The notes under the pieces: generated by a model | Database searches by the model: none | Seen by the model: only the letters and a program-made list of their open reading frames with translations | Told to the model about the DNA's origin: nothing | Position numbers and translations under genes: made by a program | Assembly (NCBI RefSeq): GCF_000143415.4 | Contig: NW_003314324.1 | Coordinates: 62,001 to 126,000 of the forward strand | Direction: 5' to 3' | Length of the DNA: 64,000 nt | From: Selaginella moellendorffii | Lineage: Eukaryota > Plantae > Lycopodiophyta | Part shown: positions 14,010-47,686 of the stretch, one piece after another | Numbering within the stretch: the stretch's first letter is position 1 | Layout of the letters: the number at the start of each line of letters is the position of its first letter

Positions 14010-14720
14010 ATATATGTGTTATAATAATTTAAATACATGTGTTTCTTTTTAAGGTGAGAGAGCGTCAACAAATGTAATGCACATGAATTTGGAACTGAAC
14101 TCCAAGCCTATTGCATTACAAAAAGAGGGTTTGATACACATTTAACATCCTTTATGAACACTAATTCCCTAAATCCAACTCTTGCATTCAAAATCGTGTC
14201 GAAAGGTGTTTAGCACAATTTTAGCTTACTAGTGGCCTAACACAAAAAACTAGGTACTCAAACCAACTAGAGCATAAAATTTATATGATTCATATTCTAA
14301 ACACAACTTCTTTTTTATGCAACTAACCAAAGTTGTATAAAACTTGGGCTTAGGCCAAAATTAGATGCAAAACAAGGGGCAACATAGCTTAACAAATGTT
14401 ACATTAGTGTTTTAGGTGGTTGGCCATACTTTTAACTACTATCTCTATTATACATTTGGTTTTGTGTTCAACTTGGGGCTAAATCTATATGTATTATAAC
14501 AATTTAAGTACATATATTTTTTTTTTAAGGTGAGAGAGCACTAACAAATGTACTGGACCTAAATTTTGGAGTTGAACTTCAAGTTTGTTGTGTTATAAAA
14601 TGAGGGTCCAATATACACTTAATATCCCTTATGAGCATCAACTCCCTATATCTAACTTTTATATGCAAAATAGTGTCAAATAGTGTTTAGCAATATTTAA
14701 GCATACTAGTAGCTTAATAT
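14010..14720 (+). repeat. Degenerate direct repeat of ~230 bp (about 14010-14240 and 14487-14720)
   Basis: Both copies read atatgt.ttataa.aatttaa...ttttaaggtgagagagc..caacaaatg...tactagt. Confidence 0.65.
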
Positions 14721-14749
14721 GAGGAACACGTGCTTTAAGCTTTCACCAT

Positions 14750-15311
14750 AGTCCCAAGAGTGAGTATCTAAGATAAGCTTAAAAATTTATTAAATACGGA
14801 ATGGCACTAGATCAGGAATTGAGAGTTCAAGACACTTTCTACATTCCATAAATATACACTATTAATAGATCTAGATATTTATCATAATTAGCATATGGGA
14901 CTGAAATGAGACTAAGATATGGGGCATGATAATAAGGGTGTCTAATGGACATAATAAGAAGCTAGACTCAATATGTGAGGTTTTTGTCATTAACCATGAG
15001 AACTCTTTACCAAGCTAAGTATCAGAGAGACATCACTTCAGATAGTAGAAACTTCTTGACTTACAATAATGCCTTTACAATTCTTAGTGCCAAATACTAT
15101 ATTTGATTTAGTTAATAGTACGTAAGAATTTCGTATTTATGCTTATTTGGTCTAAGTACACTTGAGATGTCTAATTAACTCCAGTAGCACAAGAGGAGCT
15201 AATAAAGGAATCCAATTATAACAACTTCTTTGTGTTATAATAATAATAAAAGAGTGTCCAAAAGGATTGGTTAACAAGTACTTTTCAAAACTCAAAGTCA
15301 TATTTGAGACA
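14750..15311 (-). mobile_element. Degenerate partial LTR, same family as 15517 and 22571
   Basis: Reverse complement begins tgtctcaaatatgacttt and continues similar to the 15517 LTR, including gccattccgtatttaataa. Confidence 0.65.
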
Positions 15312-15516
15312 ATAAAAAAGCATAACTATTGATTCTCATCATCTCTCCTTCATGCCTACTTTTATATGCATCACTTATGGTGGGATTTGCATCACATCTC
15401 CTTACTTAGAGGTTATAGTAGATGTATCAACTTGAGGGTCTTGCACATAAACATATAAACAAAGAAAGAGAGGTAAAAAACCCTTTAAAACACTAGGCTT
15501 TTTTCATACCATCTTT

Positions 15517-21500: not shown

Positions 21501-23641
21501 GGCTTATGGCTTTTTGCAATACTACATGTTCTTTATGGTTTGTCTTGGATTGGTCTTTTGGGTTTGAGACATTAATAAGATGTTGCTGACATTTGCTTAA
21601 GCAACTTGAGTTTCTTAGTGTTGTTGGCTGGGATTTATTCGAATTGGCTAATGTGACAGTTGGCATGAATGAGTGTTTGTTGGTCTTGCCACATTCATTC
21701 TGTTTTGTTGATTATTGATTGGGTTAGTTTTGATAGATTGGGATGCTATTTCCTTTGGGTGATACATTCGCAAGTATTCTGCTTACCAGTCAATACTTGA
21801 GTTATCTTTAATAAGTTGTTTGGCATACTGTCTACCATCTTCGATAGTTAAGTTTCATCATTGAGTTTCCTTGATGATATAATTGATGGTCATTCCTATA
21901 ATTACCAATTATGATGATCTTAGTGGTTCCTATACTGTAATACTGGTTTATCAGATGATAACTTACTTGGAATACTTTTGTGTTCTAATCTAAGCTATAT
22001 TCAGTGATAATTAAGTATCTAAGATATCATTATTTATAACTTTGATAATGTCTATCTATTGATTTTTGAGTTTGGGATAATATAGGCAAATTGGCTTTGG
22101 CACTTTGGGGTAGCTACTGTCAACTGGTCACATCACCCGCTTCTCTATTGATGTTCCTTATTCCGTCAAAAGGGCATGACCGTGTAAACAACTCTAACTG
22201 CTTGTTTACAGTAGTCTATCTAAACCTTACCGACAGGTTTGATTTCTTTGCTTATGAGGGTTGGGGCCTTTGGCTTCTCTCTTTATGTCCCTACGGGTAG
22301 GGGCGTATCACACTTTTGTAAGCTGGGTGACACCCAAAACAACAAGAGTGGCTAACTCTATTGATCATTTTTTTGTCGGCGACGGCTGGAGGTGTCTAAG
22401 CTGGTAGCACATTTGCATTAGACAAAGAGGTTGCCCCCTAACTCATTTAAGTTGGTGCATTTCTCATATAGTATGAATTCTGTGAACTTTTTCTGGAGTT
22501 GTTTCCTTGGCGGTATTCTAGACTAGAGTATGCATCAACGAGGACATCAATCTTCCCTAGGGGGGGAGAGTGTCGCAAATGTAATTTCAGGTATTGAAAT
22601 TTACTTGTTGGCCAGTCCTTACGGACACTCCTTCCTTACTGCCACGATGGCAAAAGGTCGGTATTGCTGGTTCTTTTTATCAACCCCTCTTGTTTAAATG
22701 TTAGTTTACTAAGCTTAGCATCTGTACTTAGCCAAATGGACATAAGGTAGGAACTCCTATGTATTTTTAATTGAGCATACTCAACTTAGCTCTTGATTCT
22801 CTTTTGCTCTGTCTTGCACTGGCTGACAAAAACCCTCGTGTATTAAGATTGGTCCCTCAATATCACTGGATGATAGTTTACCGTGTCTGCTAAACACCTT
22901 CGCTATCATGCCCTTTGTGTTAGTCTCATTTCGGTCTCAAATGCTATTTATGGAAAGTGTTTAGACTTGCTCATTTGGTATATCTATGGAATGTAGAGAT
23001 TGTTCTAAAGACAATGGTGTTCATCCTGTGTCCAAATTTGCAATCTAGCGCCATTCCATATTTAATAAGTTTTGAGCTTGTCCTAGAGACTAACTCCTGA
23101 TACTAAGGGAAGCTTGAGGTGAAAGCCTAAAGCATGTGTTCCTCTAAGAGGGGGGAGGAGGTGTGGGGGTTCCAAATGTATACTAGAGATAGTAGGTAGG
23201 TCAGGCATAACCAACTAACCTAAGGTTTAGTTTAGCTCCCGCTTGCGTGCCTATCCTTGTTCTGCATCTGGCTTGGGTCTAAGCCTAAGCTCCACACCAT
23301 GCTAGTTGCTAGAGTACCCATATCCTCGTGTTAGGCCACTAATATGTTAAAATAATGCCAAACTCTGTTTGGCTCTGTTTTGCGTGTTAATCTTGGCATT
23401 GGGATGCTAGTTGCTTTAGGACTGCTCCAAGTCGCTGCACTCCATGCTTGGGAGTTTGGCACCGTTTCTTCGTTCAGTGGCCCAAGGCCCTGAAACTCGA
23501 ATTCCACACCACTATCCTTTGGACATGTGGCATGTGATATATGGCACCTGTCACATGGCACAAAGAGGGTTTAAGTTCCGCTTTGTGGTTATCCTATGGT
23601 AAATCACCATAGGATAAAGGGTCAAAACCACGTGTGCTACA
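15517..23641 (+). mobile_element. Decayed LTR retrotransposon: 5' LTR 15517-17194 (N gap inside), PBS 17197-17207, PPT 22559-22570, 3' LTR 22571-23641
   Basis: Both LTRs run TGTCGC...GCTACA and are colinear. TGGTATCAGAG (iMet PBS) follows the first LTR and agggggggagag precedes the second. The interior has no intact ORF and the flanking 5-mers do not match (tcttt/atttg). Confidence 0.8.
19263..19657 (+). mobile_element. Cassandra-like 5S-containing solo LTR with a second copy (19341-19535, opposite strand) nested inside
   Basis: Outer TSD ATATT (19258-62/19658-62) and inner TSD CAAGA (19336-40/19536-40). Ends TGTAAGC...GCTTACA. 5S-like core GAGTTAAGCGTCCTTGGG...AGTACTGGGCTGGGTGAC...GGGAAGTCC. 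Confidence 0.85.
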
Positions 23642-24619
23642 ATTTGTGACCTTGAGTGCAATTAAACAAAAGTTCCCTTTTTATAATATTGTTAAAGTGT
23701 TGAATTACCTCCAATGCTCCAAGAGTGATGTTAACATTTTCTTCAAAATCTTGCTCTAAATATGACAAGAGTGCTTGATGTAGATATGTATTATCTTCAA
23801 TGTTCTATATATTATTTTTATTTGAACAAAATAGATAGTTGTATAGGTTTGATAAATTTTCTTGAGCACTGTAGTAAATGCTCAAGAGTGGGTTTGGAAG
23901 GTGTGCACATATAAATGTACAAAAAAAATCAAGAAAGAATTAAAGACACACAATTATTATGATTTCATGGTGAAAACAATATCCCATTAGTGAACACTGC
24001 ATTAGTGAATGTTGAATATGACATATTTAGGCACCCTTTAATGTAATGTGAAAACCATACATAATTTCTTCAAAAGTTTAGTTCATTATGAGTGAAGTGG
24101 AGAATCTTATATTTTTTAGAATAATAGTATTCTAGCATATATAAATGTATTTTTATATATATAAGTGGTTCTAACATTGTTATAATTCTGAAGTCCCATT
24201 TTTGAAACTGATAATCTAAACTTTCAAGAAGCCCTAGATCTATTCTTAGTATAAAGATTGACAAAGGATGCTTTTAACATTGAAAATTTAATTTATTTAG
24301 AGTGTAGGAATGGCTAGGAAAAATATTATTGCTATTTTCACTTGGCCCCATGCATTTCATATGAATCTCTACTTCCATCAATTTTTACCAATATTCCACC
24401 CTTTTCTCCACACAACAATCATTGTAGGACTTTTTCTTTTATAGCCTCAAGTGTGACTGAACAAAAGATCCCTCTTGCAAATAATGTTCTAGATATTACT
24501 ACTAAAAATGGATTACTTTATATACTTCAAAAGTGATGCAAATTGTTTTTTCGAGATATGGCTAAAACTCTATATTGTGATTTTGATGTCCTCTCTCGAT
24601 CTTAATTTGCTTCTTTAGC

Positions 24620-25810
24620 CTCATGACATCTTCAATGGCAGTGAGGACGTTCTTGTTTGCCTCCAGGAGCTCGTCCTATTTTTGATGCAAGAGGAGCACA
24701 TCCATGATTGATTCTCCAGGTTTTTTCTGCTCACCAAGACTTTGAGAGCTCAACCAAGTAAGCCAAAGCCACCATGGTTTTACTTCTTCATGGATGCCTT
24801 GCTATAAACCTGGAAAAAACAATGCAAAATTACTGAGTTCTTCCAAAGTAGAAAACAGAGTCCATCCATGAAGATAAAACCAGAGAACACAAAATTGCAT
24901 CCTTTACCAGCTTTTGATAAAAAGGAAGAAGTAAATGAATTCAATCATGGAAGCATATCTTCTTGGAACAAAGAAAAAAATAAACTTTCAATGCTATGTA
25001 AAGCAAAAAGATCAACTTCTGAAGAAAGAAGCAAAGAATTCAATCCAATGACACCATAAGCAAATGAATTCAATCCATATGATATGCATGAAAGCAAAAA
25101 GAAAACTATGAATCCAAGGCAAACTACATAAGCAAACATTATACAATCAATGCCAAGAAAGAAGAAAATTTAAAAAGGCAAGCAAAGAAAAACAAAAAAA
25201 TACCTTCGATCTGGAGTTTGGATCCTGGAGCAGCCACAGCAAACAATCCACTGCCATAAACTGCCAATCATCCAAAGATCTAGCCACATTGCACAGCGCC
25301 TCCACAACAGAGCCGTAGCTTGCGATTGCGATCCTGCCAAGCTTGTGGTAGCGGATTGTCCTCAGCAATCCGATCCTCGGCACCAAGCTCCCATTCACGA
25401 GCCCGCCCCACATCCCCAGAAGATCCACCAAGAACTCGGGCCAGCAGATCGCCAGCAAGAATTCCTCACGCAACGCAAAGCAATTCACTACCTAGAGTGA
25501 CTAGCATTGGAGCTGGCTCGCCCATTCCTTCGCCTTACACTCCACACCCTCACCGGAGGCCAAGAGTTCCTTGTGATACCCTAATTTCCGATCAACGGTC
25601 CTCTAGGTCGTCCCATACTACGCCACCCACATCCTTGGCTCCTACACCATGAATGTTGAGCGGTATGGCATCCATGCCATGCGGTACCACGCGGTACCTG
25701 TGCTGGCCGAGCTTGCCGAGGGAACGCTAACATAGGTCGAGCAGCTCGTCGCTGTGCAGTGCCTCAGCCACCTCGCCAGCTATGACTCCACGTTCCCGGG
25801 GGTGTCCTCA
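24620..25810. pseudogene. Rearranged fragments of an ARM-repeat/TPR-like gene (At5g10200-like)
   Basis: Minus strand 25203-25490: MWGGLVNGS..IGLLRTI..LCNVARSLDDWQFMAVDCLLWLLQDPNSRSKV. Plus strand 25610-25810: VPYYATHILGSYTMN..VEQLVAVQCLSHLASYDSTFP, with stops. Confidence 0.7.
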
Positions 25811-26637
25811 GGTGGCATATTGCAGCTGGCAACATGTCATATGCCACGTGTCCAAAGGACAGTGGTGTGGAACCCGAGTTTCAAGGCCTTGGGCCACTAA
25901 ACAAAGAAACAGTGCCAAACTCCTAAAAATGAAGCCAAAAAGTGATGGAATTGGACCACGGAGCAACTCTCGAACATACAACCCAAGGAGCGAAGGGACA
26001 GGAACACAAAGCAACTTAGAACAATCCTGGAGTATTTAACATCTTAATGCCAGGACCAACATGCAAAACAGAGCCAAACGAAGTCTAGCGTTATTTCAGC
26101 GTACCAATGGCCTAACGCGAGGATATGGGTACTCCACTAGCTAGCATGGTGTAGAGCTTGGGCTTAGACGCAAGCCGAACACAGAACAAAGACAGCTACA
26201 TAAGTAGGAGCTAGACTATTCTGTAAATATGCCAAATGAGCAAATCTAAACACTTTCCATAAATACCATTTGAGACCAAAATAAGACTAACACAAAAGGC
26301 ATGATAGCGAAGGTGTTTAGCAGACATGGTAAACTATCATCTAGCATTATTGAGGGACTAATCTCAATACACGAGGGTTCTTGTCAAGCTAACACAAAAC
26401 AAAGCAAACGAGAACTAACAAGCCAAGTATGCTCAGTTAAATAGACATTTAGGAATTCTTTCCTTATGCTCATTTGGCCAAATACAGATGCTAAACCCAG
26501 TTTATTAACACTTAAACAAAAGGGACTGATAAAGGGTCTAACAATACTGACCTCCTACCGTCGTGGTAGTAAGAAAAGAGTGTCCATAAGGACTGGTTGA
26601 CAGGTAACTTTCGATACTCGAAATCATATTCGCGACA
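25811..26637 (-). mobile_element. Internally deleted LTR, same family as 15517/22571
   Basis: Reverse complement starts tgtcgcgaatatgatttcgagtatcgaaagttacctg and aligns with both halves of the 22571 LTR. Confidence 0.8.
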
Positions 26638-28928
26638 CAAATGGAAAATCATCACAACACCCCTCAAAATAAAAAGAATGATTGTTATGTAAAGATATAG
26701 GTGGATTATTAGTTAAGCTTGAAGATGGAAGTGGAGATTAATATAAGAGGCATTCAAGACCAAAAGTAAACTTCTTTTGAACCATTACAACATACACGAA
26801 GAATTAAATTTTGTAACAGTAAAATTTCTCTAATTAATATATTACATTTCAATCTCAAGAATGCATTTTATTATAACATAGTAATATATTGAATCATAAT
26901 TGTTAGTCTTGGTAATTACAACTTACTATTAGAGACAAATGGCTATAGGGTTCTAAAAGCTAAAAACTCTATATATATATATAGATATAGATATATAGTT
27001 GGTTTGTTATATATAATAATGGCAAACACACATAGACACATGAGCATGCCTTTTTGCAAGAATACCTTTCAATCATGAAAACATATATAAATTTGATTCT
27101 TTGATTCATCCATACCATATATATTATAAATTTATACTCCTTGCAAAGATACAACATATTGGATATATATATAAAAAAATTACTTATCTTTATAATATTT
27201 TAGTAAATTACAAAATCTGTGGAAAGTTTTATGAAGTGAATTTGTTAGTGCTTTCTCCTATGCTATCCATTTTTTCTTTTCTTTTACTCTAGACTATTAT
27301 TTTGAAAGTAATAGAAGTATTTCTATCAATAGTAACAATGATTTCTATATTCCCAAGTGAATAATAAAGACTAAAATTGTAATATAGAGATTGTGGTAGT
27401 GAAAATAAATTAATATTTTCACATTTTTGTAAGATAAAATTACTCATAGAGTTTTTGTCTTATTTGCTTCTTATATCTGTAAAACTCTAAAGAATGAATG
27501 AGTGAATCATTGTTTCAAATTTTTTATATATTTATAGTCAATTGTTGAAATGTTAAATTATCGAAATGTACTATAGAAATTTCAAGTTACCCATAGAATT
27601 TTTCAGGTTATTTTGGTTTCAAATAAAAATGGGAATATTGAAGTTCACATTTTGGACGAACTTCTAATTCTAGAAACTACTCAATCAATATTTTATTGTA
27701 TAGGTCACATTAGAAATTAAAATTTTTCTCCATGAATATATTTAAAAAATAAAATTTTTTCTAAACCATTGACAATTAAAAAAATGAATTTGAAATTCAC
27801 CAAAGAATAACATCTTTCTTACATAATATTTCCTTATAAGAGTTATAGTTGATTATATTGACTAACATTGACTTGAGCTAAATTGAGCTCAACTTATGAA
27901 CTCAAACTCAAGTTTAGACCATCCCCCTGATGCACAACCTCTTTGCAATAGTGCATAGACTTTGCAAGTTTAACAACGCCACCCATTCAGTCTCTAGTTT
28001 TTTTCTAGCACAAGATGAACATGGTTCCATCTAGTATCTTGTAGACGCCTTTGCCAATGTGGCCTTCACATCCAGGTGACTGATGCTGTGCAAATGTAGG
28101 TGCTTCATAGCACTGCCATGCTACAATTGCTCGGTTAGCATCTTCCCCATGAATGTCAATGCAAGGCTCTGGAGGAGTTCTCCCGCTCTACCACATGCCG
28201 CTCTACCACAGCTATTTACATCCTCCAGTCATAAGCAGTTTATGAATGAATGAATGATTCGTCTCACACAGCTCTATTTGGATGAACATCAAGACACTCT
28301 CAATGCTAACTAATCTCAAAGCTTTCCTCCTGCAGTGAGAAAATTTTGCACACCATAGCCTCTTGATATCATAGATACATACTAGTGCCAATTGGAATGC
28401 TTTACAGCATAAAAACAGCCGTAAAGTCTTTTGAAAACTTTAGCTGAAATCTCCAAAACAAAATGGAAAGAGAAGTTTTTTTCTGTCTGGAAGAACACAC
28501 TCTTGGACCATCTCCAAGTAGCGAAAAACACTTCCTACAAAATACTCATGCCTGGCACTTGCTGCTACATGTGGTGGTGCCAAGGGCCTGGCTAAATGCG
28601 TCTTGGGCTTCTAGTTTCCACCCTTGTGTGTCTACTTGGGATTTGCCAGACATGGTAACCTCGTTTCCAACTTGAAAACGTTCATTCCAAATCTTATAGC
28701 AATTCCAGTCAGTACAAATCCATCGTCGTGAGCACCATTCCGAAAATAAGAATTTCTTTGCGTTTTGTGCTTGTCAAATCCAGCCGCTTGGTTTTTTGCA
28801 TTTCAAACACGTAGCGAGCGAACCCATTAAACCCGGAGTTAATTTAAGCAAAGCGTTTACTTGGCTCCCAAGGCGCGAGCACAGTTAAATAGCGGCCAGG
28901 GATCCTCGTTTAGGGATCCTTTTCTTTC

Positions 28929-30869
28929 ATGGCGTCGATCAACGAGGAAGTACTCACGATCTGCGGCCCGCCGGAGCTCGCCCTCCAAGGTATGGCGATC
29001 GATCCTCTCCCACTCAAGGGCCTCACCGAGAATCTCGCCGACACTTACGTCGCATCCGGCTCGGCCTGCCTCGATTTCTTCTTCCACATCGTCCCCGACA
29101 CCACCGATTCCTCGCGCGTCAAGGAACTGGCCACCACGGCCTGGAAAGAAGATCCCTTGACGACTCTCAAGCTCATCTTCCAGCTCCGGGGGATCCGTGG
29201 CAGCGGCAAATCGGACAAGCTCCACTTCTATGACGCTGCATGCTGGCTCTACGATCACCATCCCCGGACGCTGGCCGCCAACATCGCCAAGGTCGCCCCG
29301 GTCGGCTACTTCAAGGATCTCCTGGAGCTCGTCCAGCGGATCCTGGAAGGCGAGGTGGTGACGGCGCAGAGAATGCGCGAGAAGGAGGAGTGGAAGAACA
29401 AGAGACATGATCGGCGGTGGCGCTCGAGGATCCGCCGGAGCGGCCGGGACAGATGCGCAAGGATCACGGACAGAGCAAGGATCGCTACGCAAGGCGACCG
29501 GGAGGAGCGAGTAGCGGCGAGCATCGCCAAGGACAAGGCCGAGAAGCAAAAGGCTTCCGAGCTGCGCAAGGAGAGATCGCTGGCGCTGGCTCGCCGCGCG
29601 ATCGACAGGCTCGCCAAGGATCCCGAGTTTGCAGCGGTGTACGCCGGCGTTGCTCGCGTCTTCGCCGACGCGCTCGCCAAGGATCTGGAGGCGTACAAGC
29701 AGCACAAGAACAATGCGAGGATCAGTCTCGCGGCGAAGTGGTGTCCATCACTCGACTCCGCCTATGACAAGCAGACGCTGCTGTGCGAGGCGATCGCGTG
29801 CAAGCTCTTCCCGAAGAACAGCACCCCCGAGTTCGCGGAGCTGGACCAGAGGCAGTACGCGTACCGAGCTCGCGACAAGCTGCGCAAGGAGGTTCTGGTT
29901 CCACTGCGCAAGGCGCTGGAGCTCCCGGAGGTGTACATGAGCGCGCAGAGGTGGGACGAGCTGCCATACAACCGGGTGGCGTCGGTGGCGATGAAGACGT
30001 ACTCGAAGATCTTCACCAAGCACGACGAGGAGCGGTTCAAGCAGTACCTCGAGGACGTCAAGTCCGGCAAGGAAAAGATCGCGGCCGGGGCGGTTCTCCC
30101 GCACGAGATCCTCCGGGCTGCTGTCACCAAGGATGGCGCGGAGAGAGGCGCGGCGGAGCTGCAGTGGAGGGCGATGGTGGACGAGCTGCGGCGGAAGGGG
30201 AGCCTGGAGAACTCGGTGTCCGTCTGCGACGTGTCGGGGAGTATGAGCGGGACGCCGATGGAGGTTTGCATCGCGCTGGGGATGATCACGGCGGAGCTGA
30301 GCGACGAGCCGTGGAAGGGTCGGCTGATAACTTTCAGCGACGAGCCGGCCTTCCACGAGATCCGGGGCGAGACGCTGGCGGAGAAGTACGAGTTCACGAC
30401 GAGGATGCCGTGGGACATGAACACCGACTTCCAGAAGGTGTTTGATCGGATCCTGGAGCGAGCCCGCGAGTTTAACGTCCCGCCGGAGAAGATGGTGAAG
30501 AGGCTCTTCGTCTACAGCGACATGGAGTTTGACGAGGCCAGGGGGAAACACTACGGCGGCGTGTACAATCCTCGGCCGGATTGGTGGGGTGGCGAACAGG
30601 CGCCAGGTTGGGAGACGGATCATATGGCGATCAAGCGCAAGTTCAAGGAGGCCGGGTACGTGGAGCCGCCGCAGATTGTCTTCTGGAACTTGAGGGACTC
30701 GGAGAGCGTCCCGGTGCTCAAGGACGAGCCCGGCGTGGCGCTCGTCTCGGGCTTCTCCAAGAACATACTCAAGATGTTCCTGGAGAACAGCGGGGCTATC
30801 GATCCCATGCTCATCCTCCGGAGTGCCATCTCGGACAAGATCTACGAGGACATGGTGGTGGTGGATTGA
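28929..30869 (+). CDS. DUF2828 family protein with C-terminal vWA domain (copy 2)
   Basis: 646-aa intronless ORF, closely paralogous to 10426-12465, with the same motifs (LAAKWCPS, DVSGSM, SDMEFD, IVFWNLR). Confidence 0.9.
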   Translation: MASINEEVLTICGPPELALQGMAIDPLPLKGLTENLADTYVASGSACLDFFFHIVPDTTDSSRVKELATTAWKEDPLTTLKLIFQLRGIRGSGKSDKLHFYDAACWLYDHHPRTLAANIAKVAPVGYFKDLLELVQRILEGEVVTAQRMREKEEWKNKRHDRRWRSRIRRSGRDRCARITDRARIATQGDREERVAASIAKDKAEKQKASELRKERSLALARRAIDRLAKDPEFAAVYAGVARVFADALAKDLEAYKQHKNNARISLAAKWCPSLDSAYDKQTLLCEAIACKLFPKNSTPEFAELDQRQYAYRARDKLRKEVLVPLRKALELPEVYMSAQRWDELPYNRVASVAMKTYSKIFTKHDEERFKQYLEDVKSGKEKIAAGAVLPHEILRAAVTKDGAERGAAELQWRAMVDELRRKGSLENSVSVCDVSGSMSGTPMEVCIALGMITAELSDEPWKGRLITFSDEPAFHEIRGETLAEKYEFTTRMPWDMNTDFQKVFDRILERAREFNVPPEKMVKRLFVYSDMEFDEARGKHYGGVYNPRPDWWGGEQAPGWETDHMAIKRKFKEAGYVEPPQIVFWNLRDSESVPVLKDEPGVALVSGFSKNILKMFLENSGAIDPMLILRSAISDKIYEDMVVVD

Positions 30870-36578: not shown

Positions 36579-38106
36579 CTACTTTAACTTAATTGGCAGT
36601 CCTTTAGTCGGCATTGCAACTGGGGTATAGGAAACTGGTTCATCGGGTTCCACTAGGGTCCACTCATATCTTGTGACCAAGTGGTGAAGAAACACCATCA
36701 CCTGCATTTTCGCAAGTTGGATGCCCGGGCAGATCCGGGGTCCTCCACCGAATGGAATATATGTGTATGGAACCGGTCCCGTGCCTTCTGCAAATCGGGA
36801 TGGCTCAAACTTGAAAGGCTCGGCAAAAAACTCTGGTTTTCTGTAGCTCCGGTAGCCCGATATTAAGAGCTGCAGCAAAGAGATTACATTCTTTCCTATA
36901 GGTAAACAAAAAAGATGGTATTTACCTGCCAGCCTTTTGGGATGGTGAAACCATCCATCTCGACATCTTTGAGAGCTTTGCGAAGGATGCCAAACCCGGT
37001 CGGCATCACTCGCAGTGTCTCCTGGATAACCATCCATGTGTATTTCATCTTGCGGAGGTCGTTCTGGTTGAGTTCCTCCCCAGGCTGCTTGGCTGATAGT
37101 ATATCCATGTGTTCTGGCATAGATGATCATGGTAAGTTTCGATCAAAAATCTTCGACAAGTTTGCTTACCTCTGCGAAGCTCCTGGTAGCAGGCTGGATT
37201 TTGAGCCAGGCACTTGAGGGTCATGGCTAGCGAGCTGGAACTGGTGTCATGGCCGGCGAAGAGCAGCGATAGGATGTTGTCTTTGATCTGGTCGTCGTTC
37301 ATGAGCTTGCCATTGTCGAGCTTGGTGCTGAGAAGCAGTGACAGGAGATCTTGCTGGCAAGACGACCCATTCTCGAGCTCGATCCTTCTCCGCGCGATAT
37401 ACTTGTCAAACATCTTGTAGAGCTCCACCCGACCCTTCTTGGCGTGGTGGAAGTTCGTCCAGGGGAGATCGAGCGGCAAGGAGATGAGCCCCTTGATGAT
37501 CTTGGCCAGCGGCTCGAGCAGCTCCAGCTGTTCTTCTTCATCACTCACGCTAAGGAATGCACAACAGGTGACCGAGAAGAGAGCCTGTTTGATGAGAGAA
37601 TAAGCCAGCACGGTCTCCCCATGCTTCCAGTGCTTGTGGAGGTGATCTTGAATCATGTTGCTCGTAGGCACGACTTGGCTCTGGACGGCTTGAGCACTCA
37701 GAAAGGTCATGAGCACGTCACGGAAGCTCTTGGCCTCCTCTCCAGACATGAAGTTTATGGCGTTTGATCCAACCAGCGTCTTCATCGGGCTAGGCCACGC
37801 AGTCTCCACCAAGAGGTTGTGGTTTGAGAAGACAAGCTTGTTGCCTTGGGGAGGACTGACCATCACCATTGGGGAGCCAAACAAGGAGGTCTTGAAGATC
37901 TTACCGTACTTGGCTTCCCGCTGTTCGATAAACTCCCAGGGCCGGTTGCTCTTGGTGTATCGTATGAACTGGAGGGTCTCGCCGAGTAGCGGAAGGCCCA
38001 GGCTCCCAGGAGGCAGATCCATCGCTTTGAATCTTCTCCATCGCTGGAGATACGCGAGTGCTGCTGCCCCAATGCAAACAAGGTAAAGTACCAGCACAGG
38101 CACCAT
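36579..38106 (-). CDS. Cytochrome P450, CYP85 clan, CYP716-like; exons 38106-37170, 37113-36926, 36869-36579
   Basis: N-terminal TM helix, PPGSLGLPLLGETLQF, IFKTSLFGSP, I-helix FAGHDTS, QETLR, EPSRF, heme FGGGPRICPG. Splice junctions keep the frame. Confidence 0.9.
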
Positions 38107-38191
38107 AACTGCGCCTAAAGCTATCTTTTTGCAATTTACATATCGATAGTCGAAAGTGCTATCGCTCTGTTAAAAATGCTCAACTTCTTAG

Positions 38192-39210
38192 AGTGTAGAT
38201 CCCGATAGGACATTGTTGACTTGATTTTCGTGTTTGAGTTTCTTACCTAGCCATGACAAAATGCCATCGAATATTGTAATTTGCCAAGCCGCTTGTACGT
38301 GAAACATGGAGAACTTGGCCAAGCACATAAAAAAGCCGTGTCAAGCGCCTTTAAGTTATTAAAACAAGCAGTCAAACTTTGTCATAAGGCAATGGAGTCG
38401 CCATCCACTTGACAAGCCAAATTTGCCACCGTCGGGAAATCTCCAGTCTAATGCCTGTAGATATTGACTTGATTTTAGCCTAGCCATGACAAAATGCCAT
38501 GGAATATTGTAATTTGATTCCATAATCAAACACCATTAGGAGTCTTGAGGGAATAAAAGTCTTTTAATTTGAAAAAGAGGAAGCAAGTTCTAAGCAAAAC
38601 ATCGAAAACTTGACCAAGCAATTTCTGCGTAAAACATGGGAAACTTGGCCAAGCAACTTCTAGGAACTTGAAAAAGCGTGAAACATGGAAAACTAGCAAC
38701 ATGTCGCCTTTAAGTTAGCCAGACTTCATAAATTCTTAAAACAAGTCTTTAAAATAGTCAAACTTTGTCGTGGTAGCGAGTCGCCATCCAGTCCAGTCTA
38801 ATGACAGTGTAGATTCCGAACATTTTTGACTTGGCTTTACTTTTTATTGGGACAAAATGCCATGGAACGACTCCTTTTGGGGGGATGCCACCCAGCAGGG
38901 TCGATGCACACCCCAGCCGCCCGACGGAGTCCACCGGCGAATATTGTAATTTGACACAACAATCAAAGTCATGAACGAATAGAAGTCTTTACATTTGACA
39001 ATGAGGAAGCAAGTTCTACGCAAAACATGGAGAACTTGGCCAAGCAACTTCTATGTAAAACATGCCAAGAAACTTCTACGTAAAACATGCCAAGAAACTT
39101 CTAAGTAAAATATGGAGAACTTTAAGTTTTAGTAAACAGTCAAACTTTCTCATAAGCATGAGGTGGTAGCCGAGGAGCAACCACAGCTCGCAATGGAGTC
39201 GCCATCCAAT
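38192..39210. repeat. Three degenerate tandem units derived from the 3' end/3' UTR of the CYP71-clan gene, with ~20-35 bp sub-repeats
   Basis: agtcaaacttt...gagtcgccatcca at ~38370, ~38756 and ~39138 (the real stop region). gacaaaatgccat and aatattgtaatttg occur three times each. aaacatggagaacttggccaagc is repeated. Confidence 0.8.
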
Positions 39211-40712
39211 TGACCAAGCCGAAAGCCTCGTCCATGGAAGCATCTTTCCCACCGCCGCCGTTGGGAAAGCTCCAGTCGAAGCCATGGACGAGATTTGACA
39301 AAGCCAACTCGACCGTTTTCAGTCCCAGCTGAAGCCCAGGACACGACCGTCGCCCCGAGCCGAATGGAAGGAGCTCGAAGTCCTGGCCTCGGACGTCCAT
39401 GCCCTTCCCCGCCCCCTCGAGGAACCTCTCGGGAGAGAACCGAGTGGGATCCTCCCACACCGTTGGGTCTCTCCCAATCGCGTAGACATTGACGAGCGTG
39501 GTAGCCCCCTTTGGAACGTCGTAGCCGGCCACCTTGCATTCGTATCTTGACATGTGTGGGACGAGCAGCGCGATCGGGGGGTGGAGACGAAAGGTCTCCT
39601 TGATGATCGCGTGCAGGTAGTGGAGCTTGGGGAAATCCGATTCGTTTACCATGCGATCTTTCCCTACCACCGTGTCGAGCTCGTCTTGGGCCTTCTTCAA
39701 TGCAAGTGGGTTTCGAAGTAGCTCCGCCAGGATCCACTCCACTGTTGTGATGGATGTGTCGGTTCCCCCTGGCAGCAAATCCTGATACACAATTGTCAAG
39801 AGCTGTTCTTGAAAAACAAATACTCACTGAAAGCACAGCTTTGATGTTGTCCAAGTCGGTTCGAGAGTCTCCATGGTTGAAATAGGAGAGAAGGATGTCT
39901 ATGAAATCTCTAGGCTTGGCTAGAGCATCGTGACCAACCTTGTGTTCGTCGATGATCTCCTGGAGGAACCTGTCCTGGCGAGCATGAAGCCTCTTGAAAC
40001 GAGGGATGTTCCAGTCGATCCACTTGAATGCACTGGGAATGTACTCGCTCACGTTGAAACTCCCGGCCACCTGCAAGATCTCCTCCACAATCCCCCGAAA
40101 CTCCCGAGCCTTGCCCTGTGAGTCCGCGCCAGCCGGCCCGAAGAAGGCGCGGTCCATCAGGATTCGCGTCATGACATTGAAAGTAAAGTCGGTGAGGAAG
40201 CTCTTGATTTGCACCACCTCCTTGCTCGCCGATTTCGCCAGCAATCCAGATACCATGCCGGACAGCTCCTCCACTCTCACCCACGAGAAGGAGTCGATCC
40301 GCTTGGCCGTGAAGAGCTCGGTGGAGCACAGCTTCCTCATCATCTTCCAGTGATCGCCATAGGGGGCGAGGCCAATGTTGTGGAAGTTGTAAGCAGCGTA
40401 CTCACCGACGAGGAGGTATGGCCTCGACGCAAATGCGAGGTCGTGGGTCTTGAGAACTTCCTTGGCCATGGCTGGACTGGACGCCACAATCACTGGTACT
40501 GTGCCAAATCGGAGGTGCATGAGTGGCCCGTGGGCTTGCGACAGCTTTTGCAAGGATCGGTGTGGCAGTGTGCTCAGGAGATGGAGATGGCCGATCAAAG
40601 GCAAGCCCCGCGGACCTGGTGGTAGTCGTACCTTGAAAGAGCGGTATTGCCTCCATAGCGCTCCAGCCAGGAGGATCAAGCCCAGGTAGAGCGCAAGATC
40701 GAAGAGTTCCAT
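39140..40712 (-). CDS. Cytochrome P450, CYP71 clan; exons 40712-39828, 39781-39140
   Basis: PPGPRGLPLIGHLH, WKMMRK, GGTDTS, KETFR, FSPERF, heme FGSGRRSCPG. One 46-bp phase-0 intron just before the I-helix, typical of A-type P450s. Confidence 0.93.
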
Positions 40713-40874
40713 TCTAGCTAGAACTCGGAAGTATTGGATTCAATGTAAGACCTAGATTTATATAACGGTGGTGTACTGGAGATGGTGTTTGAAATCGATC
40801 TTTCATGAGCCTTTTGAAAGTGTTTGATTACGAAGGTCTTTATTCAAGATCAAAAGGAAAATACAGCGACGCTT

Positions 40875-42317
40875 TCACGCTTTCATGGCAACTTTCAAGG
40901 CTTTCTTACACAGACTCTTTGACCAGCTAGAGATCTCTTTGTCAGCAAAGTTGCGAGTGAAGAAGACGTCATTGAGCAGCTTTTCCTTGTGAGTTTGCGC
41001 CAGCCGGATGTGTATGTCGACGCCCCTGCTCTGATCGATCGATTTCGGCTCTGGGGCTGGAGCTGGAAACAGCGCCACAAACGAAGGCGGCAGAGCAGTC
41101 GGAAGAAGGCAAAGCTGAGCCAATGCGCCACCCCGCCAGCCAAAATCAATGCCATAGACTGGAAACCTCCCCAGAGATGTGGAGAGCAAACCTCGCTTCC
41201 AGTGAAGTGATGCTGGCAGTGCCATGGGAGAGTTTAACTCGAGCCAGTCCACGGCACTGCGCATGCAAAGGTGGTCGGAGCTAACGATCTTCTCGTGGAT
41301 CAGCTTGGCAGCAAAGCTCTTGTCACTCGCGACTTGTCCCGCAGTGGCAGCGTATGCCTGGCATGGAATGAGGGCATTGCCAAAGTAGTCTTCGGGGATC
41401 TGGGGCGCAAATCTACCTTTGCTTCGCAAGTTGATGGGCAGCATGTAGGAAGTATCAAGATGCCCGGGAATGGCTTTTGCTGCGGTTATAGACGACCAAA
41501 GCAATGCCGAGACAGTCTCAAAGGTGGTGGCTCTGCCATAGCCGAACTTGGTGGAGCTTTCGATCTCTCGGGCGCAGGAATCGATGGCCTCTTTACCCAT
41601 CCGCAGCACCATCGATTCGTGTTCTTCCGCCCTTCCAAAGTCGAAGCCGAGTGCATCTTGCTGTGCGTTTTCTACGACGAAAGGCACCGGGGCATCCACG
41701 ACTGGAGAGCTGCGAGCTTTCAGCACCGCGGTTGTGAAGTCTTGGCGAGTTCTTGGGTTGATCGGCGAGACCCCACGGTGGATCTCACTCCATCGCGTGA
41801 GAAATTTGACGAGGCTGTACCCGTCCATGACCATGTGTAGAAAGTGGAAGCCAATGGCCACTCCTCCACAGCGAAACGTTGTCACCTGGACTTGCATCAA
41901 TGACATCTGGGAGAGATCAGCATGATCACCAGAAAGCGAGAAATCGACCGAAATTGGGCACTGCCTGAGGTCCGACCACTCGTCGAGGCTCGCATCGCTC
42001 CTGGATTCAATGACGTTCACACCTTGGGAGTTGACATTCACCTCAAGCTTGAAAGGTGCCTCGCCGTGGCAAATCCGGCCAGCGAGCACAGGGAACTCGG
42101 CCAGTGCTTTGGACAGGGACGACTTGAGGCCTTGGTGGAGCTCTCGCTCGCCATGATGCGGAGAGACGCAGTCGCGGAAGAAGAACACAAGCTCATGGTA
42201 CTCCGGCCTTGGGATCCAATTGATGAGGTCGAGATTGGTGAGCTCATAGTTCCAGCCAGGGGACGATGGGATTGCTGGAGTTACCAAGTGAACCTGGGAC
42301 TTGATAGGCTTATCCAT
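40875..42317 (-). CDS. BAHD acyl-CoA acyltransferase
   Basis: Intronless ORF (first ATG at 42317): LKSSLSKALAEFPVLAGR, QVTTFRCGG, catalytic HMVMDG (HxxxD), YFGNA, DFGWR. Confidence 0.92.
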   Translation of the reverse strand: MDKPIKSQVHLVTPAIPSSPGWNYELTNLDLINWIPRPEYHELVFFFRDCVSPHHGERELHQGLKSSLSKALAEFPVLAGRICHGEAPFKLEVNVNSQGVNVIESRSDASLDEWSDLRQCPISVDFSLSGDHADLSQMSLMQVQVTTFRCGGVAIGFHFLHMVMDGYSLVKFLTRWSEIHRGVSPINPRTRQDFTTAVLKARSSPVVDAPVPFVVENAQQDALGFDFGRAEEHESMVLRMGKEAIDSCAREIESSTKFGYGRATTFETVSALLWSSITAAKAIPGHLDTSYMLPINLRSKGRFAPQIPEDYFGNALIPCQAYAATAGQVASDKSFAAKLIHEKIVSSDHLCMRSAVDWLELNSPMALPASLHWKRGLLSTSLGRFPVYGIDFGWRGGALAQLCLLPTALPPSFVALFPAPAPEPKSIDQSRGVDIHIRLAQTHKEKLLNDVFFTRNFADKEISSWSKSLCKKALKVAMKA

Positions 42318-42733
42318 CACTTGGGTACCTTCCACAGCAGTGCAAATCAGGCTGTCAGAATTTCTTATCTATCTATATGTTGTTTTGGTAGTCTCGTGGT
42401 GCCCGTCGTGAAGCATGACACCAAATTGTGATGCATGCACGAGATCGCGACAGAATTAGCTGGATATTCAAAAGTGGTCTGCAATTTTTTACGCTCCGAT
42501 TATCAGAGTCGTTCACGACTCCCAGGGATGTGCAAGTCAGTCAAACATGCCGGCCTAACCACATGCCACACGTTGCGCATTTGTGGGAAAGATTGTTGAC
42601 GAGAAAGTTTAATAGACTGGAAAGGGTGGCGAGCCTTCGCGGTCGTGTTCGTCATCGTTGCTCAAAATAAGTCCAAGTCCACATCAGATCTTTGCTTAAA
42701 ACAAAGGGATGCGCTGATTCTACAATCACTAAT

Positions 42734-45700
42734 ATGATTTCATTCAGAGCATATGGAAGCAACTTCAGTGTTCATGATGTGCCATATGCAGGCTCTTCTG
42801 ATTATGCTCGGATCAGTTGTAGATTGCAGAGCAGGGAATATAAGTTTCCATCCTGCCAATTGCAACGTTGTAAGGCTTTACCAAGCGTCACGAAGGAGAG
42901 TGCTCCTTGTCACGAATCTCTCCAGTTCTTGGAGGAGGTATTTCCCCTCGTGTTCCACTCTGATTACAATGCTTTTGACAGGAAACAGTTCCAGCATCCA
43001 CCACCGACAGTAAAGCATATATGATAGAGGAAATGAGAAAATTGCTTGCAACCTTGGACGATGGAGAAATCAGTCCCTCTGCTTATGACACAGCTTGGGT
43101 TGCTCGGATCCCCTCGCAGTCAAACGCTACTTGCCCAGAATTCCCCGAAACACTGGAGTGGATTGCTCATAACCAGCTTCCTGATGGATCTTGGGGGGAT
43201 AGGAACCACTTTCAAATTTATGATCGGGTATTGAGCACAGTCTCATGCTTAGTTGCGTTGAAAACGTGGAACCTGGGACATGACAACATCAATAAAGGTA
43301 GTTTCCATGATATAAATCAAGGTTATCTCCTAACATTTTGTGATCAGGTGAAAGATTCCTCAAGCAAAACATATACAAACTTACAAAAGATAAAGGAGAT
43401 TTACTTTGTGGTTTTGAGCTCATTTTTATGACGATGCTAGAGGAAGCCAAACAGAAGGGTCTAGACATTCCAATTGATATTCCAGCTCTAAAAATTCTTC
43501 AAGGATATCGTCAAAAGAAGTTGCAAAAGTAATTAAACTCAAATTTGCTAACATAGTCAATTGAATGCACTAATTTTTCTTTACATATCCAGGATTCCAT
43601 TGGAGATGGTTCATTCTATTCCAACAACAATTCTATATTCTTTAGAAGGATTGCAAGATCACATCAACTGGGAAAAGATTTTGCAGTTCATAGGCACTGA
43701 TGGATCGTTTCTAAGTTCCCCTTCTGCCACAGCTTGTGTATATATGCACACAAAGGACCCCAGATGCTTGGAGTATCTCAAAGGAGTGGTTAAAAAAGTG
43801 AAAAACTCAGGTAAATTTATGTTGTTTGAGTTGATACTGTCAATATTCTAAAAACTATAACTTTAGTGCCATGTCAATATGCTATCGATTTATTTGAGCG
43901 TTTATGGATTGTTGATACCTTGGAAAGGCTAGGAATTGATCGATATTTTCAACCTGAAATTAAAAACATATTAGATTATGTGTATAAGTAAGTATGAATA
44001 GTCAATAACAATTGTCCACTAACAATTTTATGATAGATATTGGAGTGATAAAAAAGGAATTGGATGGGGGAGAGAAAGCTATCTCAAAGATATTGACGAC
44101 ACATCAATGGGCTTTCGTCTGCTCAGGTTGCATGGATATAAGGTGACACCAGGTAAGGTTCTTTTATTCTGTTTATTCATGCATATACATATGGAAAAAA
44201 ATGCGTTTATGTAGATGTATTTCTAAATTTTATGTCAAGCGAAGACAAATTCTTCTGTTTCCCTGGCGAATCATATCATGGTGCTTCTGATATATTCAAT
44301 CTATACAGAGCATCCCAAGTCGCTTTTGCAAACGACAATATCTTGACAAAAGCTAAGAACTATGCTCATAAATATTTATCACAACTTGATAAAGCTTACT
44401 TAGACAAATGGTCAGCCAAGAAAAACTTTTTCCAAGAGGTACACATCTAATTAACATTGATATAGTTCATTTTCAATCTCAATTCAGGTAGAGTTTGAGT
44501 TATCGAACCAGTGGAATTCATGTCTTCCAAGGGCGTATTCTAAATCTTATATTCACAATTACGGCCCGAACGATATATGGATAGCCAAAACAATTTACAG
44601 GTGATTTTCTTTATTTGCTTTTGAAATTCCTTAAGGAATCAACTACAGGCTGCCTTTTGTAAACAATGAGCTCTTCATAAATCTGGCAAAAGAGGACTTC
44701 AACGCATGCCAGTCAATTCACCAATCAGAAATCCAGACGCTCTTGAGGTACAATATAAAGCTCAAAATCACACCTTGATTAAGTTGTGTTTGTGTAAAGG
44801 TGGTGGGCCGCGCTCAAGTTTGGAGATCTTCCATTTTTTGGTGACAAGGTCGTGACAGCCCACTTTAGCATTGCGTCTTGCATGTTTGAGCCAGAGTTCT
44901 CGGAGTTGCGGCTCTTCTACACAAAGTACGCTCTCCTCAGCTCGACGCTCGACGATTTAGCCGATTACTATGGCAGCCCTGCACAGACCAGATGTATTCT
45001 TGAGGCTATCAGGAGGTGAGCAAAGCTTTGAAAAGCGAGAAGTTCTCATCAAACAGTGTCCACAGCTGGGATCCATCTCTCGTGAGCCACTTATCCGAGG
45101 AAGTTCAAATTTGCTTCAGTGGCTTGTACCGGACTATCAACGAAATGGTTAAAAGCGCTTCGAAGGTTCAAACTGGTTCATCCATTAATATAAGGGAACA
45201 CATGCAAGAACAAGTAATGTGCAAATGCAATGTAGCATGATCTGATTTTCTGATTCGTTGATGCAGTTGGCAAAGCTCATCAGTGCTCAACTAGTTGATG
45301 CGGAATGGATGGAAAGAAAACACATCCCGAGCTTTGAAACATACTTGAGCAATGCCACCGTCAGTGTTGGGATGCAAGACTTGCTCCTGAGCTCCATCTT
45401 CTTCTGTGGCGAATCCATCTCAAAACATCTGATGCAAGAGATCAAGAACTCACGCTGCCTGCAACTGACGTGCTTGATCGCAAGGCTGTGCAATGACATT
45501 GGAACATATCAGGTGAGCTTTCCAATCTGTGATCGCTTGATCAACTCACAAGTGATGGTTTCTTTCCAGTTTGAACGAGAGAAAGGCGAAGTTGCCTCAA
45601 GCATTACATGCTACATGCGAGAAAACCGGGGCATCACTGAATCCCAGGCCATAGAACACTTGCAAGGAATCATAGATGAAAGCTGGAAGGAGCTAACTGA

Positions 45701-45863
45701 GGAGTTCTTGACACCCAGCCAGATTCCTCGAAGCATCAAGAGGCTCATGTTTGAAACAGCGCGGATATTCCAGTTCATCTATCCCAAGAAGGACAACTTC
45801 AAAGATCCCAGCAAAGCCATGGCGTCTCTCATACAAAATGTGTTGTATAAACCAGCTGAATGA
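42734..45863 (+). CDS. CPSKSL1: Bifunctional class II/class I diterpene synthase (gamma-beta-alpha), resembling SmCPSKSL1 labda-7,13E-dien-15-ol synthase
   Basis: [17 protein letters not shown], class II DIDD (44089-44100), class I DDLAD (44951-44965), [18 protein letters not shown]. The [10 protein letters not shown]...VLYKPAE sequence matches my recollection of SmCPSKSL1, so the symbol needs BLAST confirmation. Confidence 0.9.
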
Positions 45864-45922
45864 AGGCATGCAAAGATTTAACATCAATTGTTGGCAAAAA
45901 GGAATAAAAAATACCTTGAAAA

Positions 45923-47686
45923 TCAGAAGTCAGTGTGACTATTTTCATTCACCACGAAAGTCTTGGAGTCTAGAAATTGTTTCATGTAATTTAGAGTCCA
46001 CTCTCGGGGCGCACCATACTCTTCTACAAGATGGGAGACGAATGTTTGCACCTCCTTCTCCTAGAACAAGCAGTGTCTCCACTGTAAGTAACGTCACCAG
46101 AAGATCACATACCTGTTTGTCATAGCCTTGTGAGATATCAATGTACTGTGATCTAGCAGCTCTAACTTTCTCCTTTATGAAGAGCTCTTGCTCCGGCGTG
46201 AGGCCCGAATCTGATGCTCGAAGCTCCGCGACAACCTGAGAGTGTGAAAGATTTGAAGCACAGGTGAAAGATTTCTTTTCTTGCTCGCCTTTTTAAGCTG
46301 CTCCAATTCTTGGAGAGCACCGTCTCGTTCTTCGGTGAGACGCAAAGCGACGGCTTCCAGAGACTGCTTCTCTGCCTCGGATCGTTCGCTTTGGGATGCC
46401 ATTTCTTTCAACCTCGCAACCTGGAGCGCGGAGAATCAGCAAACATTAAGTGGAAAGAAGACTAAACCGATGAACCTCCTGTAAAGCCGAGTCCCTCTCG
46501 GTTGCCAGCTGACATGCTAGCACCTCCAGTGCCTCGTTTTGTTGCCTGAATTGTTGGACTTCTTGAGCTAGAGCTTTCTCCACGGAAGAGATTCTCCCCT
46601 GCATGGCCTCGACAGCTTTTCTGAGCCCCGACACCTACACTACGAGCACATCATCTCATCCACGGAAAAGAAAGAAATGGAACTGTGATCTACCTCGGAA
46701 ATTGCAGAGTCCCTCTCCTTGACAAGCTCCATTGCGACCGCTTCAAGAGCCTCCTTCTCAGCAGCCAAGCGGGCGAAATCACTAGCGGCTTGCTTCATTT
46801 CTTCCACCTGATGAAAAACTGTCGTTGAGACAACAATCGAAAAGGAACGAGTGGGAACATACTTTGTTCACTGCTGCGTCGCGTTCCTTGGCAAGTTTTT
46901 CCAGCGCTTGCACGACAGCCTCGTCCATATCCTGTAAGTTTTTTGCAAGCACTAAATCCACGTAGAAGAAAAAGAAGAATCAATTACGCGAGGAAGAACT
47001 ACCGTCGTCCGTTGGACGCGTGAATTCTCGCTACTGTCGACCAACTCACTGATGGCCTTGAACGGAGAAGTCGCAACGAGCACATTGTTCTTCCCTTTCA
47101 AAGCTCGACTACACACGAACAAAACTCCGTCAAGCTTTCAAGAAAGAAGAAACACAGGAGAATACCAAGCTTTCAAGAAAGAAGAAACACAAGAGAATAC
47201 CGAGAAAGAAATCTATCTGATCGCTTACCCAGCGATGAGGATCGAGTAGCCCACGCCCACTGCCTGGAGCGCCTCGGGAACCAGCGGCAAGACCTCCAGT
47301 GAGCTCAGCACACTGCCTCCAATCGCAAGCCCGACACCGGCAATTCCGCCATACAATGCGAGCTCTCCAGCGCTCTTGTCCTTGAGTCCTTTGCGAAATT
47401 CCTCCAAAATCCTCGTTCTGCTGGCTCCAATCTCGCCTTCTACCTCGAGCTTACGCACCTCTTCCTTCTTCTTGCCCGCCGGCTCGTCTTGCAATGAGAG
47501 CTTGAGCTCCGCCGGGCCAAGATCCAAGGGCTTGTAATCCGGAGAAGAAGAAGCCGCCGATGACACCGCTGCTCGATCCGGCGCTTTGAATCCATCATCG
47601 CCAGTGGCAGCGCACCGCGCATCGGGCTTGCGGAAGAGAGACGATGGGAAGATCAAGGCGGGGTAGCGCTGAGCCACAGAGGCCAT
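45923..47686 (-). CDS. CURT1/CAAD-domain thylakoid protein with long C-terminal coiled coil, multi-exon
   Basis: Transit-like N-terminus, then ALYGGIAGVGLAIGGSVLSSLEVLPLVPEALQAVGVGYS (CAAD two-TM motif). Three repeats of E.EALE.VA..L..ERD.A..E follow. Last exon ends NSHTDF-stop at 45923. Confidence 0.72.

Follow-up and report, generated by a model that had tools for sequence, protein, structure and literature searches.

The lycophyte Selaginella moellendorffii carries, at positions 36579-45863 of the 64,000-nucleotide stretch of DNA analysed in this work (hereafter the window; ~98.6-107.9 kb of scaffold GL377628.1), a real neighbourhood of four genes, all of them intact and expressed, built around the characterised diterpene synthase SmCPSKSL1. 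Within 9,285 bp, genes for a CYP716-like cytochrome P450 (P450), a CYP71-clan P450, a BAHD acyltransferase and the synthase lie contiguously. In our view, the locus most likely represents all or part of a gene cluster for the biosynthesis of a decorated labdane, with circumstantial support from the transcription of the four genes in the same samples, a divergent BAHD/synthase promoter, joint damage of these two genes on the other haplotype, the resemblance of the P450s to diterpene oxidases of solved structure, and a precedent in Cistus. It appears evenly balanced whether at least one of the three neighbours acts on the SmCPSKSL1 product, and rather doubtful that three or more of the genes share one pathway, as the formal definition of a cluster has it. 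The connection between BAHD and synthase is the best supported one, and there is less certainty about the part played by either P450. Chief among the alternatives is neutral co-location, a serious contender that we rate at somewhat less than an even chance.

The four-gene locus and its diterpene synthase

Gene models were built by splice-aware mapping of public proteins onto the window DNA, and all introns in the four models are of the GT-AG type, with lengths of 44-64 nt. The public annotation of GL377628.1 (1,151,164 bp, the scaffold with a 100% match to the exon of the CYP71-clan gene SELMODRAFT_120910; public look-up interval of the locus, GL377628.1:91,140-112,712) records products of 831, 480, 508 and 471 aa in an order identical to that of our models. 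Pfam searches of the corresponding open reading frame (ORF) pieces returned p450, p450, Transferase (BAHD) and Terpene_synth_C, and the catalytic motifs of all four genes are present (FGGGPRICPG, FGSGRRSCPG, HMVMD, DFGWR, DIDD, DDLAD and NDIGTYQFE). Thus, the first-pass annotation, which had described four intact adjoining genes in ~9.3 kb without an intervening gene, was borne out: ORF and Pfam analysis, the RNA contigs and the public annotation of the stretch revealed no gene between the four, and an Rfam search of the four-gene stretch gave no match. At least three non-homologous enzyme genes are therefore side by side, namely a terpene synthase (TPS), a BAHD, a CYP71-clan P450 and a CYP85-clan P450; the P450 pair does not consist of tandem copies, since their mutual identity is only ~23-33%.

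The synthase gene (42734..45863, plus strand, 13 exons, 831 aa) encodes the bifunctional class II/I labda-7,13E-dien-15-ol synthase of the TPS-h type, SmCPSKSL1. As first proposed from the letters of the sequence, this identity is firm: the predicted protein is 100% identical to NP_001411806.1 over 831 residues, it agrees with Swiss-Prot G1DGI7 at every residue from 82 to 831, and a single residue separates it from the characterised clone AEK75338. The class II motif DxDD is present as DIDD at residue 365, and the class I motifs DDxxD and NSE/DTE as DDLAD at 582 and NDIGTYQFE at 728, with the N-terminal 81 aa presumed to constitute a transit peptide. According to the literature, the enzyme converts geranylgeranyl diphosphate (GGPP) into labda-7,13E-dien-15-ol. 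For its C-terminal domain, no close orthologue was found outside S. moellendorffii; a search of 1.8 billion representatives gave only one cluster at E<1e-30.

Transcription was assessed with the assembled contigs of four RNA runs (X5, X17, X7 and X18) aligned to 37300-43299; near-identical transcripts occur in ~20 public runs from 6-7 studies. All four genes were assembled as separate spliced transcripts in three of the four runs (X5, X17 and X7). The splice joints of the contigs coincide with the predicted introns 39781-39826 (in all four runs) and 42936-42979 (between exons 1 and 2 of the synthase), and none of the four runs covers 38300-38900 or 42500-42700; because the predicted introns are skipped exactly and the intergenic stretches are uncovered, the contigs derive from RNA. 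Within 37300-43299, no listed contig piece joins two genes. The BAHD transcript spans ~40823-42333 and that of the synthase begins at 42717, so that both genes are arranged head-to-head with their transcript ends ~384 bp apart. The interval between these contig ends (42334..42716), which includes the depth bin 42500-42699 with zero cover, constitutes a divergent promoter region common to both genes.

The candidate modifying enzymes

The first P450 gene (36579..38106, minus strand; exons 38106-37170, 37113-36926 and 36869-36579) encodes a CYP85-clan, CYP716-like protein of 471 aa, with the motifs AGHDTS at 284, ETLR at 344, PSRF at 398 and FGGGPRICPG at 415. Its allele on the other haplotype, with 99% identity, bears the RefSeq automatic name "cytochrome P450 716B2". 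By convention, a P450 is placed in a family when it is at least 40% identical to the named members of that family. Full-length identities of 40-44% were obtained to named CYP716 and conifer 716B proteins, including 40.1-42.0% to CYP716D22, D25 and D59 and 41.6% to a beta-amyrin 28-oxidase, and values below 40% to CYP716D20 (39.8%) and Stevia KA13H (39.2%). Judged from these identities, membership in the CYP716 family appears borderline and "CYP716-like" a fair label; an official CYP name for the protein was not found. The closest Selaginella paralog is 53% identical, and the nearest solved structure is that of taxadiene 5-alpha-hydroxylase, CYP725A4 (3e-113).

The second P450 gene (39140..40712, minus strand; exons 40712-39828 and 39781-39140) encodes a 508-aa protein of the CYP71 clan, 100% identical to SELMODRAFT_120910 (EFJ14295) and with ABV80347 as its allele. 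The motifs FGSGRRSCPG, GGTDTS, ETFR, PERF and PPGP are all present. It shares 39-45% identity with CYP71AU, CYP92, CYP736, CYP93 and CYP81 proteins and 50-53% with Selaginella paralogs, and no single seed-plant family can be assigned on this basis. Both clan assignments of the first-pass annotation thus stood, with one protein at 40-44% to named CYP716 members and the other among CYP71-clan families. The nearest solved structures of the second P450 are ferruginol synthase CYP76AH1 (7e-92) and then sugiol synthase; hence, the best structural matches of both P450s are diterpene oxidases. Identity of the CYP71-clan protein with the lignin enzyme SmF5H (CYP788A1) was ruled out, given that SmF5H corresponds to ABV80343, of 521 aa, and the allele ABV80347 has 508 aa. 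The protein or its allele carries the RefSeq automatic name "flavonoid 3'-monooxygenase", which looks like a misnomer at ~40-45% identity to any seed-plant family.

The BAHD gene (40875..42317, minus strand, single exon) encodes 480 aa, and the exact protein is present in public sets on GL377628.1. It matches Pfam Transferase (1.8e-49) and carries the HXXXD motif as HMVMD at residue 161. The structural DFGWG motif reads DFGWR at residue 391; because a 43%-identical paralog shares the variant, it appears to be a clade trait and not a lesion. Relatives are few: Selaginella paralogs with 43-53% identity, and grass omega-hydroxy-acid feruloyl transferases with ~31%; no close orthologue outside S. 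moellendorffii was found by sequence search. The nearest solved structures are hydroxycinnamoyl transferases of the shikimate O-hydroxycinnamoyltransferase (HCT) type (~2e-34), including the Selaginella HCT 6dd2. In HCTs, the acceptor site includes an arginine handle (Arg356 in AtHCT) together with Thr369 and Trp371. Compared with 5kjt (AtHCT) and 6dd2 (SmHCT), the BAHD of the window has Ala in place of Arg356 and Leu in place of Trp371, with only Thr369 kept. Its fold, HXXXD motif and best PDB matches link it to HCT; its overall sequence (~30% identity), the Ala/Leu acceptor site and the DFGWR motif set it apart. Motif variants such as NFGWG are present in active BAHDs (PMC11156806).

The RefSeq automatic name of the BAHD or its allele is "shikimate O-hydroxycinnamoyltransferase". 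A true HCT was rejected on account of the Ala at the arginine handle and the Leu at the Trp371 position, and the RefSeq name is probably wrong. A carboxylate acceptor seems unlikely because the arginine handle of shikimate HCTs is absent. The closest named angiosperm relatives, the omega-hydroxy-fatty-acid feruloyl transferases (~31% identity), acylate primary aliphatic alcohols. Since the nearest relatives use hydroxycinnamoyl-CoA, a hydroxycinnamoyl ester would be at least as likely as an acetate for the product of the candidate BAHD.

Allelic variation and genomic surroundings

The other haplotype of the locus (haplotype 2; GL377610.1:59,310-80,837), proposed in the first-pass annotation as a check of synteny, displays identical gene order and flanks, with 97-99% identity in genes and ~95% in non-coding parts. 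In the haplotype-2 BAHD, codon 260 is a stop (41538 A>T) and one nucleotide is deleted at 41259, which account for the public BAHD models of 259 aa and 384 aa; exon 1 of the haplotype-2 synthase lacks 10 nt (42922-42931), so that the presumed transit peptide is no longer in frame. The haplotype-2 alleles of both P450s are intact, and the lesions fall exactly on the divergent BAHD-synthase pair. The sequenced plant is therefore heterozygous for an intact copy of the locus, that of the window, and a damaged one. The ratio of nonsynonymous to synonymous substitution rates (dN/dS) between haplotypes is lowest in the P450 genes (CYP716-like, 0.10; CYP71-clan, 0.18), intermediate in the synthase gene (0.26) and highest in the BAHD gene (0.68). 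The values of 0.10-0.18 indicate purifying selection on the P450s, and the range of 0.10-0.26 for the synthase and P450s suggests continuing constraint.

The RNA contigs also differ in their alleles. In runs X5 and X7, the CYP71-clan contigs include haplotype-2 single-nucleotide polymorphisms, as does the CYP716-like contig of X7 with one, and only haplotype 1 is represented in the contigs of BAHD and synthase, a pattern that fits real haplotype-2 lesions and reduced mRNA. In run X17, the BAHD contigs are largely haplotype-2-like and free of lesions, and the synthase contig (window 42755-43299) represents a third SmCPSKSL1 allele, likewise without the lesion, in which 6 of 8 differences match neither reference haplotype; therefore, laboratory stocks of S. 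moellendorffii are not all of the reference genotype. The haplotype alignment breaks at 38126-38389. The intergenic spacer between the P450 genes (38107..39139), in which the CYP716-like gene has its promoter and 5' end, shows many indels. The break lies exactly at 38126, and this promoter and 5' end are replaced or heavily indel-ridden between haplotypes over 38126-38389. Contigs from X17 and X7 continue from 38126 into sequence absent from the window, presumably the haplotype-2 5' untranslated region.

The genes flanking the locus are unrelated to the cluster enzymes. Of the FtsH and CURT1-like flanks named in the first-pass annotation, FtsH was confirmed on one side (Pfam AAA and Peptidase_M41), and the CURT1-like assignment was weakly supported. 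This latter gene, which adjoins the synthase (window 45922-47686, minus strand, 437 aa), is convergent with it, with its 3' end ~59 bp from the synthase stop codon; its protein has a CAAD-domain match at E=1.7e-4, below the Pfam cut-off, and the public annotation records no Pfam family for it. A PPR gene is located on the side opposite to FtsH (Pfam on ORFs), and genes further out include PPR, GH38 mannosidase, xyloglucan fucosyltransferase, radial spoke, NIF and DUF2828 genes. Two DUF2828/DUF7788 genes are present in the window (10426-12465 and 28929-30869); the upstream copy shows ~84% DNA identity to the haplotype-2 copy of the downstream gene and is broken by an assembly gap (N run 11395-11550). 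In contrast to the gene-dense region of GC 0.5 around the four genes, positions 12000-28000 form a long AT-rich stretch (GC 0.30-0.41) with few long ORFs and an assembly gap of 547 nt at 16108-16654, which is probably repeat or transposon sequence.

Proposed pathway, alternatives and known systems

In the pathway that we propose, SmCPSKSL1 would provide labda-7,13E-dien-15-ol from GGPP; the CYP716-like and CYP71-clan P450s, anchored in the endoplasmic reticulum, may act on ring or methyl positions of the labdane by hydroxylation or further oxidation; and the cytosolic BAHD would esterify either the free primary hydroxyl at C15 or one that a P450 has introduced, with an acetyl-CoA donor or, at least as likely, a hydroxycinnamoyl-CoA donor. 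Taken to its boldest form, this would be the first functional diterpenoid cluster of a lycophyte, assembled independently of those of seed plants and mosses, producing an oxidised labdadienyl ester, possibly a hydroxycinnamoyl-labdane hybrid made by a BAHD of HCT ancestry that no longer has a shikimate site, and segregating as intact and null haplotypes; we regard this version as unlikely, although it merits consideration.

Several observations weigh against a shared pathway. Many computed plant clusters prove not to share one, and the genome is gene-dense, with ~1 gene per 2-3 kb in the window, so that four neighbours span only 9 kb. Run X18 contains both P450s, a fragmentary BAHD and no synthase, and contig depths cannot measure co-expression, since they, like word shares, reflect the quality of library and assembly. 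The P450s are constrained on a haplotype where BAHD and synthase have decayed, and could thus serve another pathway. The nearest-structure link of the P450s to diterpenes is a lead only and a weak argument, because few plant P450 structures exist; the BAHD, in turn, is ~30% identical at most to characterised enzymes and has DFGWR replacing DFGWG. Furthermore, SmCPSKSL1 alone of the four enzymes has a known activity, and no oxidised or acylated labda-7,13-diene has been reported from Selaginella, for which a 2013 review lists only gibberellins and enzyme products (PMC3650682).

Under neutral co-location, four expressed genes of different pathways would have become adjacent through a compact genome and large P450 and BAHD families, with none of the neighbours using the SmCPSKSL1 product. 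Such an arrangement would agree with the lack of a known functional link between the four genes, with the gene packing, with the P450 transcripts of X18 that lack a synthase counterpart, with the purifying selection on P450s beside a damaged synthase and BAHD, and with closest paralogs that lie elsewhere, unclustered. In favour of a cluster, on the other hand, three control loci were themselves unclustered: that of another bifunctional diterpene synthase, that of the CYP716-like paralog closest in sequence, and that of a BAHD paralog which shares the scaffold. P450s represent ~1%, and BAHDs a few per thousand, of ~22,000 genes (approximate values). S. moellendorffii has 66 TPS genes, 18 of them plant-type (PMC3650682). 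Under random gene order, a neighbourhood in which the six genes nearest to any one of these 18 include two unlike P450s and a BAHD would be expected ~1e-3 to 1e-4 times per genome, an estimate that uses approximate gene totals and a null that is naive for specialised-metabolism genes. Against mere co-location stand this low expectation (~1e-3 or less), the common promoter region and joint decay of BAHD and synthase, and the derivation of both P450s from lineages with diterpene oxidases; in addition, the free hydroxyl of the synthase product is acylated by a BAHD elsewhere (PMC11156806).

A smaller, phenolic-ester module is conceivable, in which the HCT-like BAHD and the CYP71-clan P450 would act on hydroxycinnamoyl esters in the manner of HCT and its meta-hydroxylase, leaving the synthase and the CYP716-like P450 outside. 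The hydroxycinnamoyl-CoA transferases that are the nearest solved and named relatives of the BAHD, as well as both RefSeq automatic names, point in this direction, as does the accession of the allele ABV80347, which belongs to the series of SmF5H (ABV80343) and was probably cloned as a phenylpropanoid hydroxylase candidate. However, the BAHD is set apart from shikimate HCTs by its acceptor-site residues, the P450 differs from SmF5H and is closest, among solved structures, to a diterpene oxidase and not to C4H or IFS, and the promoter region of the BAHD is common with the synthase and not with the P450; we thus consider this module improbable. A former pathway in decay, being lost in the species and yielding no end product today, would explain the disabling lesions in two of the four genes on one of two haplotypes and the lack of a known product from the plant, but is very improbable given the fully intact haplotype of the window, the lesion-free BAHD and further synthase allele of X17, the low dN/dS of synthase and P450s, and the transcription of all four genes.

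A decorated-labdane cluster, complete or partial, thus remains our preferred reading. What was already known of the locus comprises the four gene annotations and the characterised synthase. The first-pass annotation knew of no published description of the steps after SmCPSKSL1, and the full-text literature search agreed, finding no paper on the cluster, its gene IDs or these steps. The validated diterpenoid clusters listed in the literature belong to grasses, Lamiaceae, Euphorbiaceae and one bryophyte (PMC9945934, PMC8201998), and no lycophyte cluster appears in a 2022 review by the group that had characterised SmCPSKSL1 (PMC9945934). The plantiSMASH 2.0 preprint reports a run on the S. moellendorffii genome and highlights a different cluster, and the tool would very likely flag the present locus. 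The locus is a credible candidate, and would be the first gene cluster for diterpenoids in a lycophyte. If true, the synthase/P450/acyltransferase architecture would have arisen independently in a lineage split from seed plants ~400 million years ago, and the orphan enzyme SmCPSKSL1 would gain a pathway and a natural product. The list of candidates for a direct test is short, with three genes, a scaffold already made in yeast and a natural null haplotype, and labdane esters are commercially relevant (labdanum, ambrox precursors).

Clusters combining a scaffold synthase, P450s and an acyltransferase are a known plant architecture. For instance, the Arabidopsis clusters of the thalianol/marneral type tightly link a scaffold synthase, P450s of unlike clans and a BAHD, as is the case here; they differ in being triterpene clusters of an angiosperm, with an oxidosqualene cyclase instead of a TPS, and in that their co-expression and chemistry have been demonstrated. 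The taxane pathway offers a parallel for the proposed modifications, with a CYP85-clan P450 family related to CYP716 (CYP725A) that hydroxylates a diterpene and BAHDs that acylate the hydroxyls; its substrate, however, is taxadiene and not a labdane, and the P450 similarity is at the family level (~40%) and implies no orthology.

The first-pass annotation had described such clusters as mostly angiosperm, to which a diterpenoid cluster outside the seed plants must be added: momilactone clusters are known from rice (Os4BGC) and from the moss Calohypnum plumiforme, the latter with a bifunctional class II/I synthase (PMC8201998, PMC9945934). As in the Selaginella locus, a labdane-related diterpene synthase is located beside P450s of different families. 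The momilactone clusters differ in that they are functionally validated, contain a dehydrogenase instead of a BAHD and include other P450 families, while the Selaginella steps after the synthase are predicted from the genes.

The closest biochemical precedent for the candidate BAHD comes from Cistus creticus, where CcLAT, itself a BAHD, acetylates labda-7,13E-dien-15-ol at C15 (PMC11156806). CcLAT groups with alcohol acetyltransferases of the RhAAT1/SAAT type, unlike the Selaginella BAHD, which is nearest to hydroxycinnamoyl transferases; moreover, the Cistus synthases are monofunctional class II enzymes, and no genomic clustering has been reported for them. Both systems nevertheless meet at the same labdane alcohol, SmCPSKSL1 being the positive control in the study of CcLDDS1/2 and CcLAT (PMC11156806).

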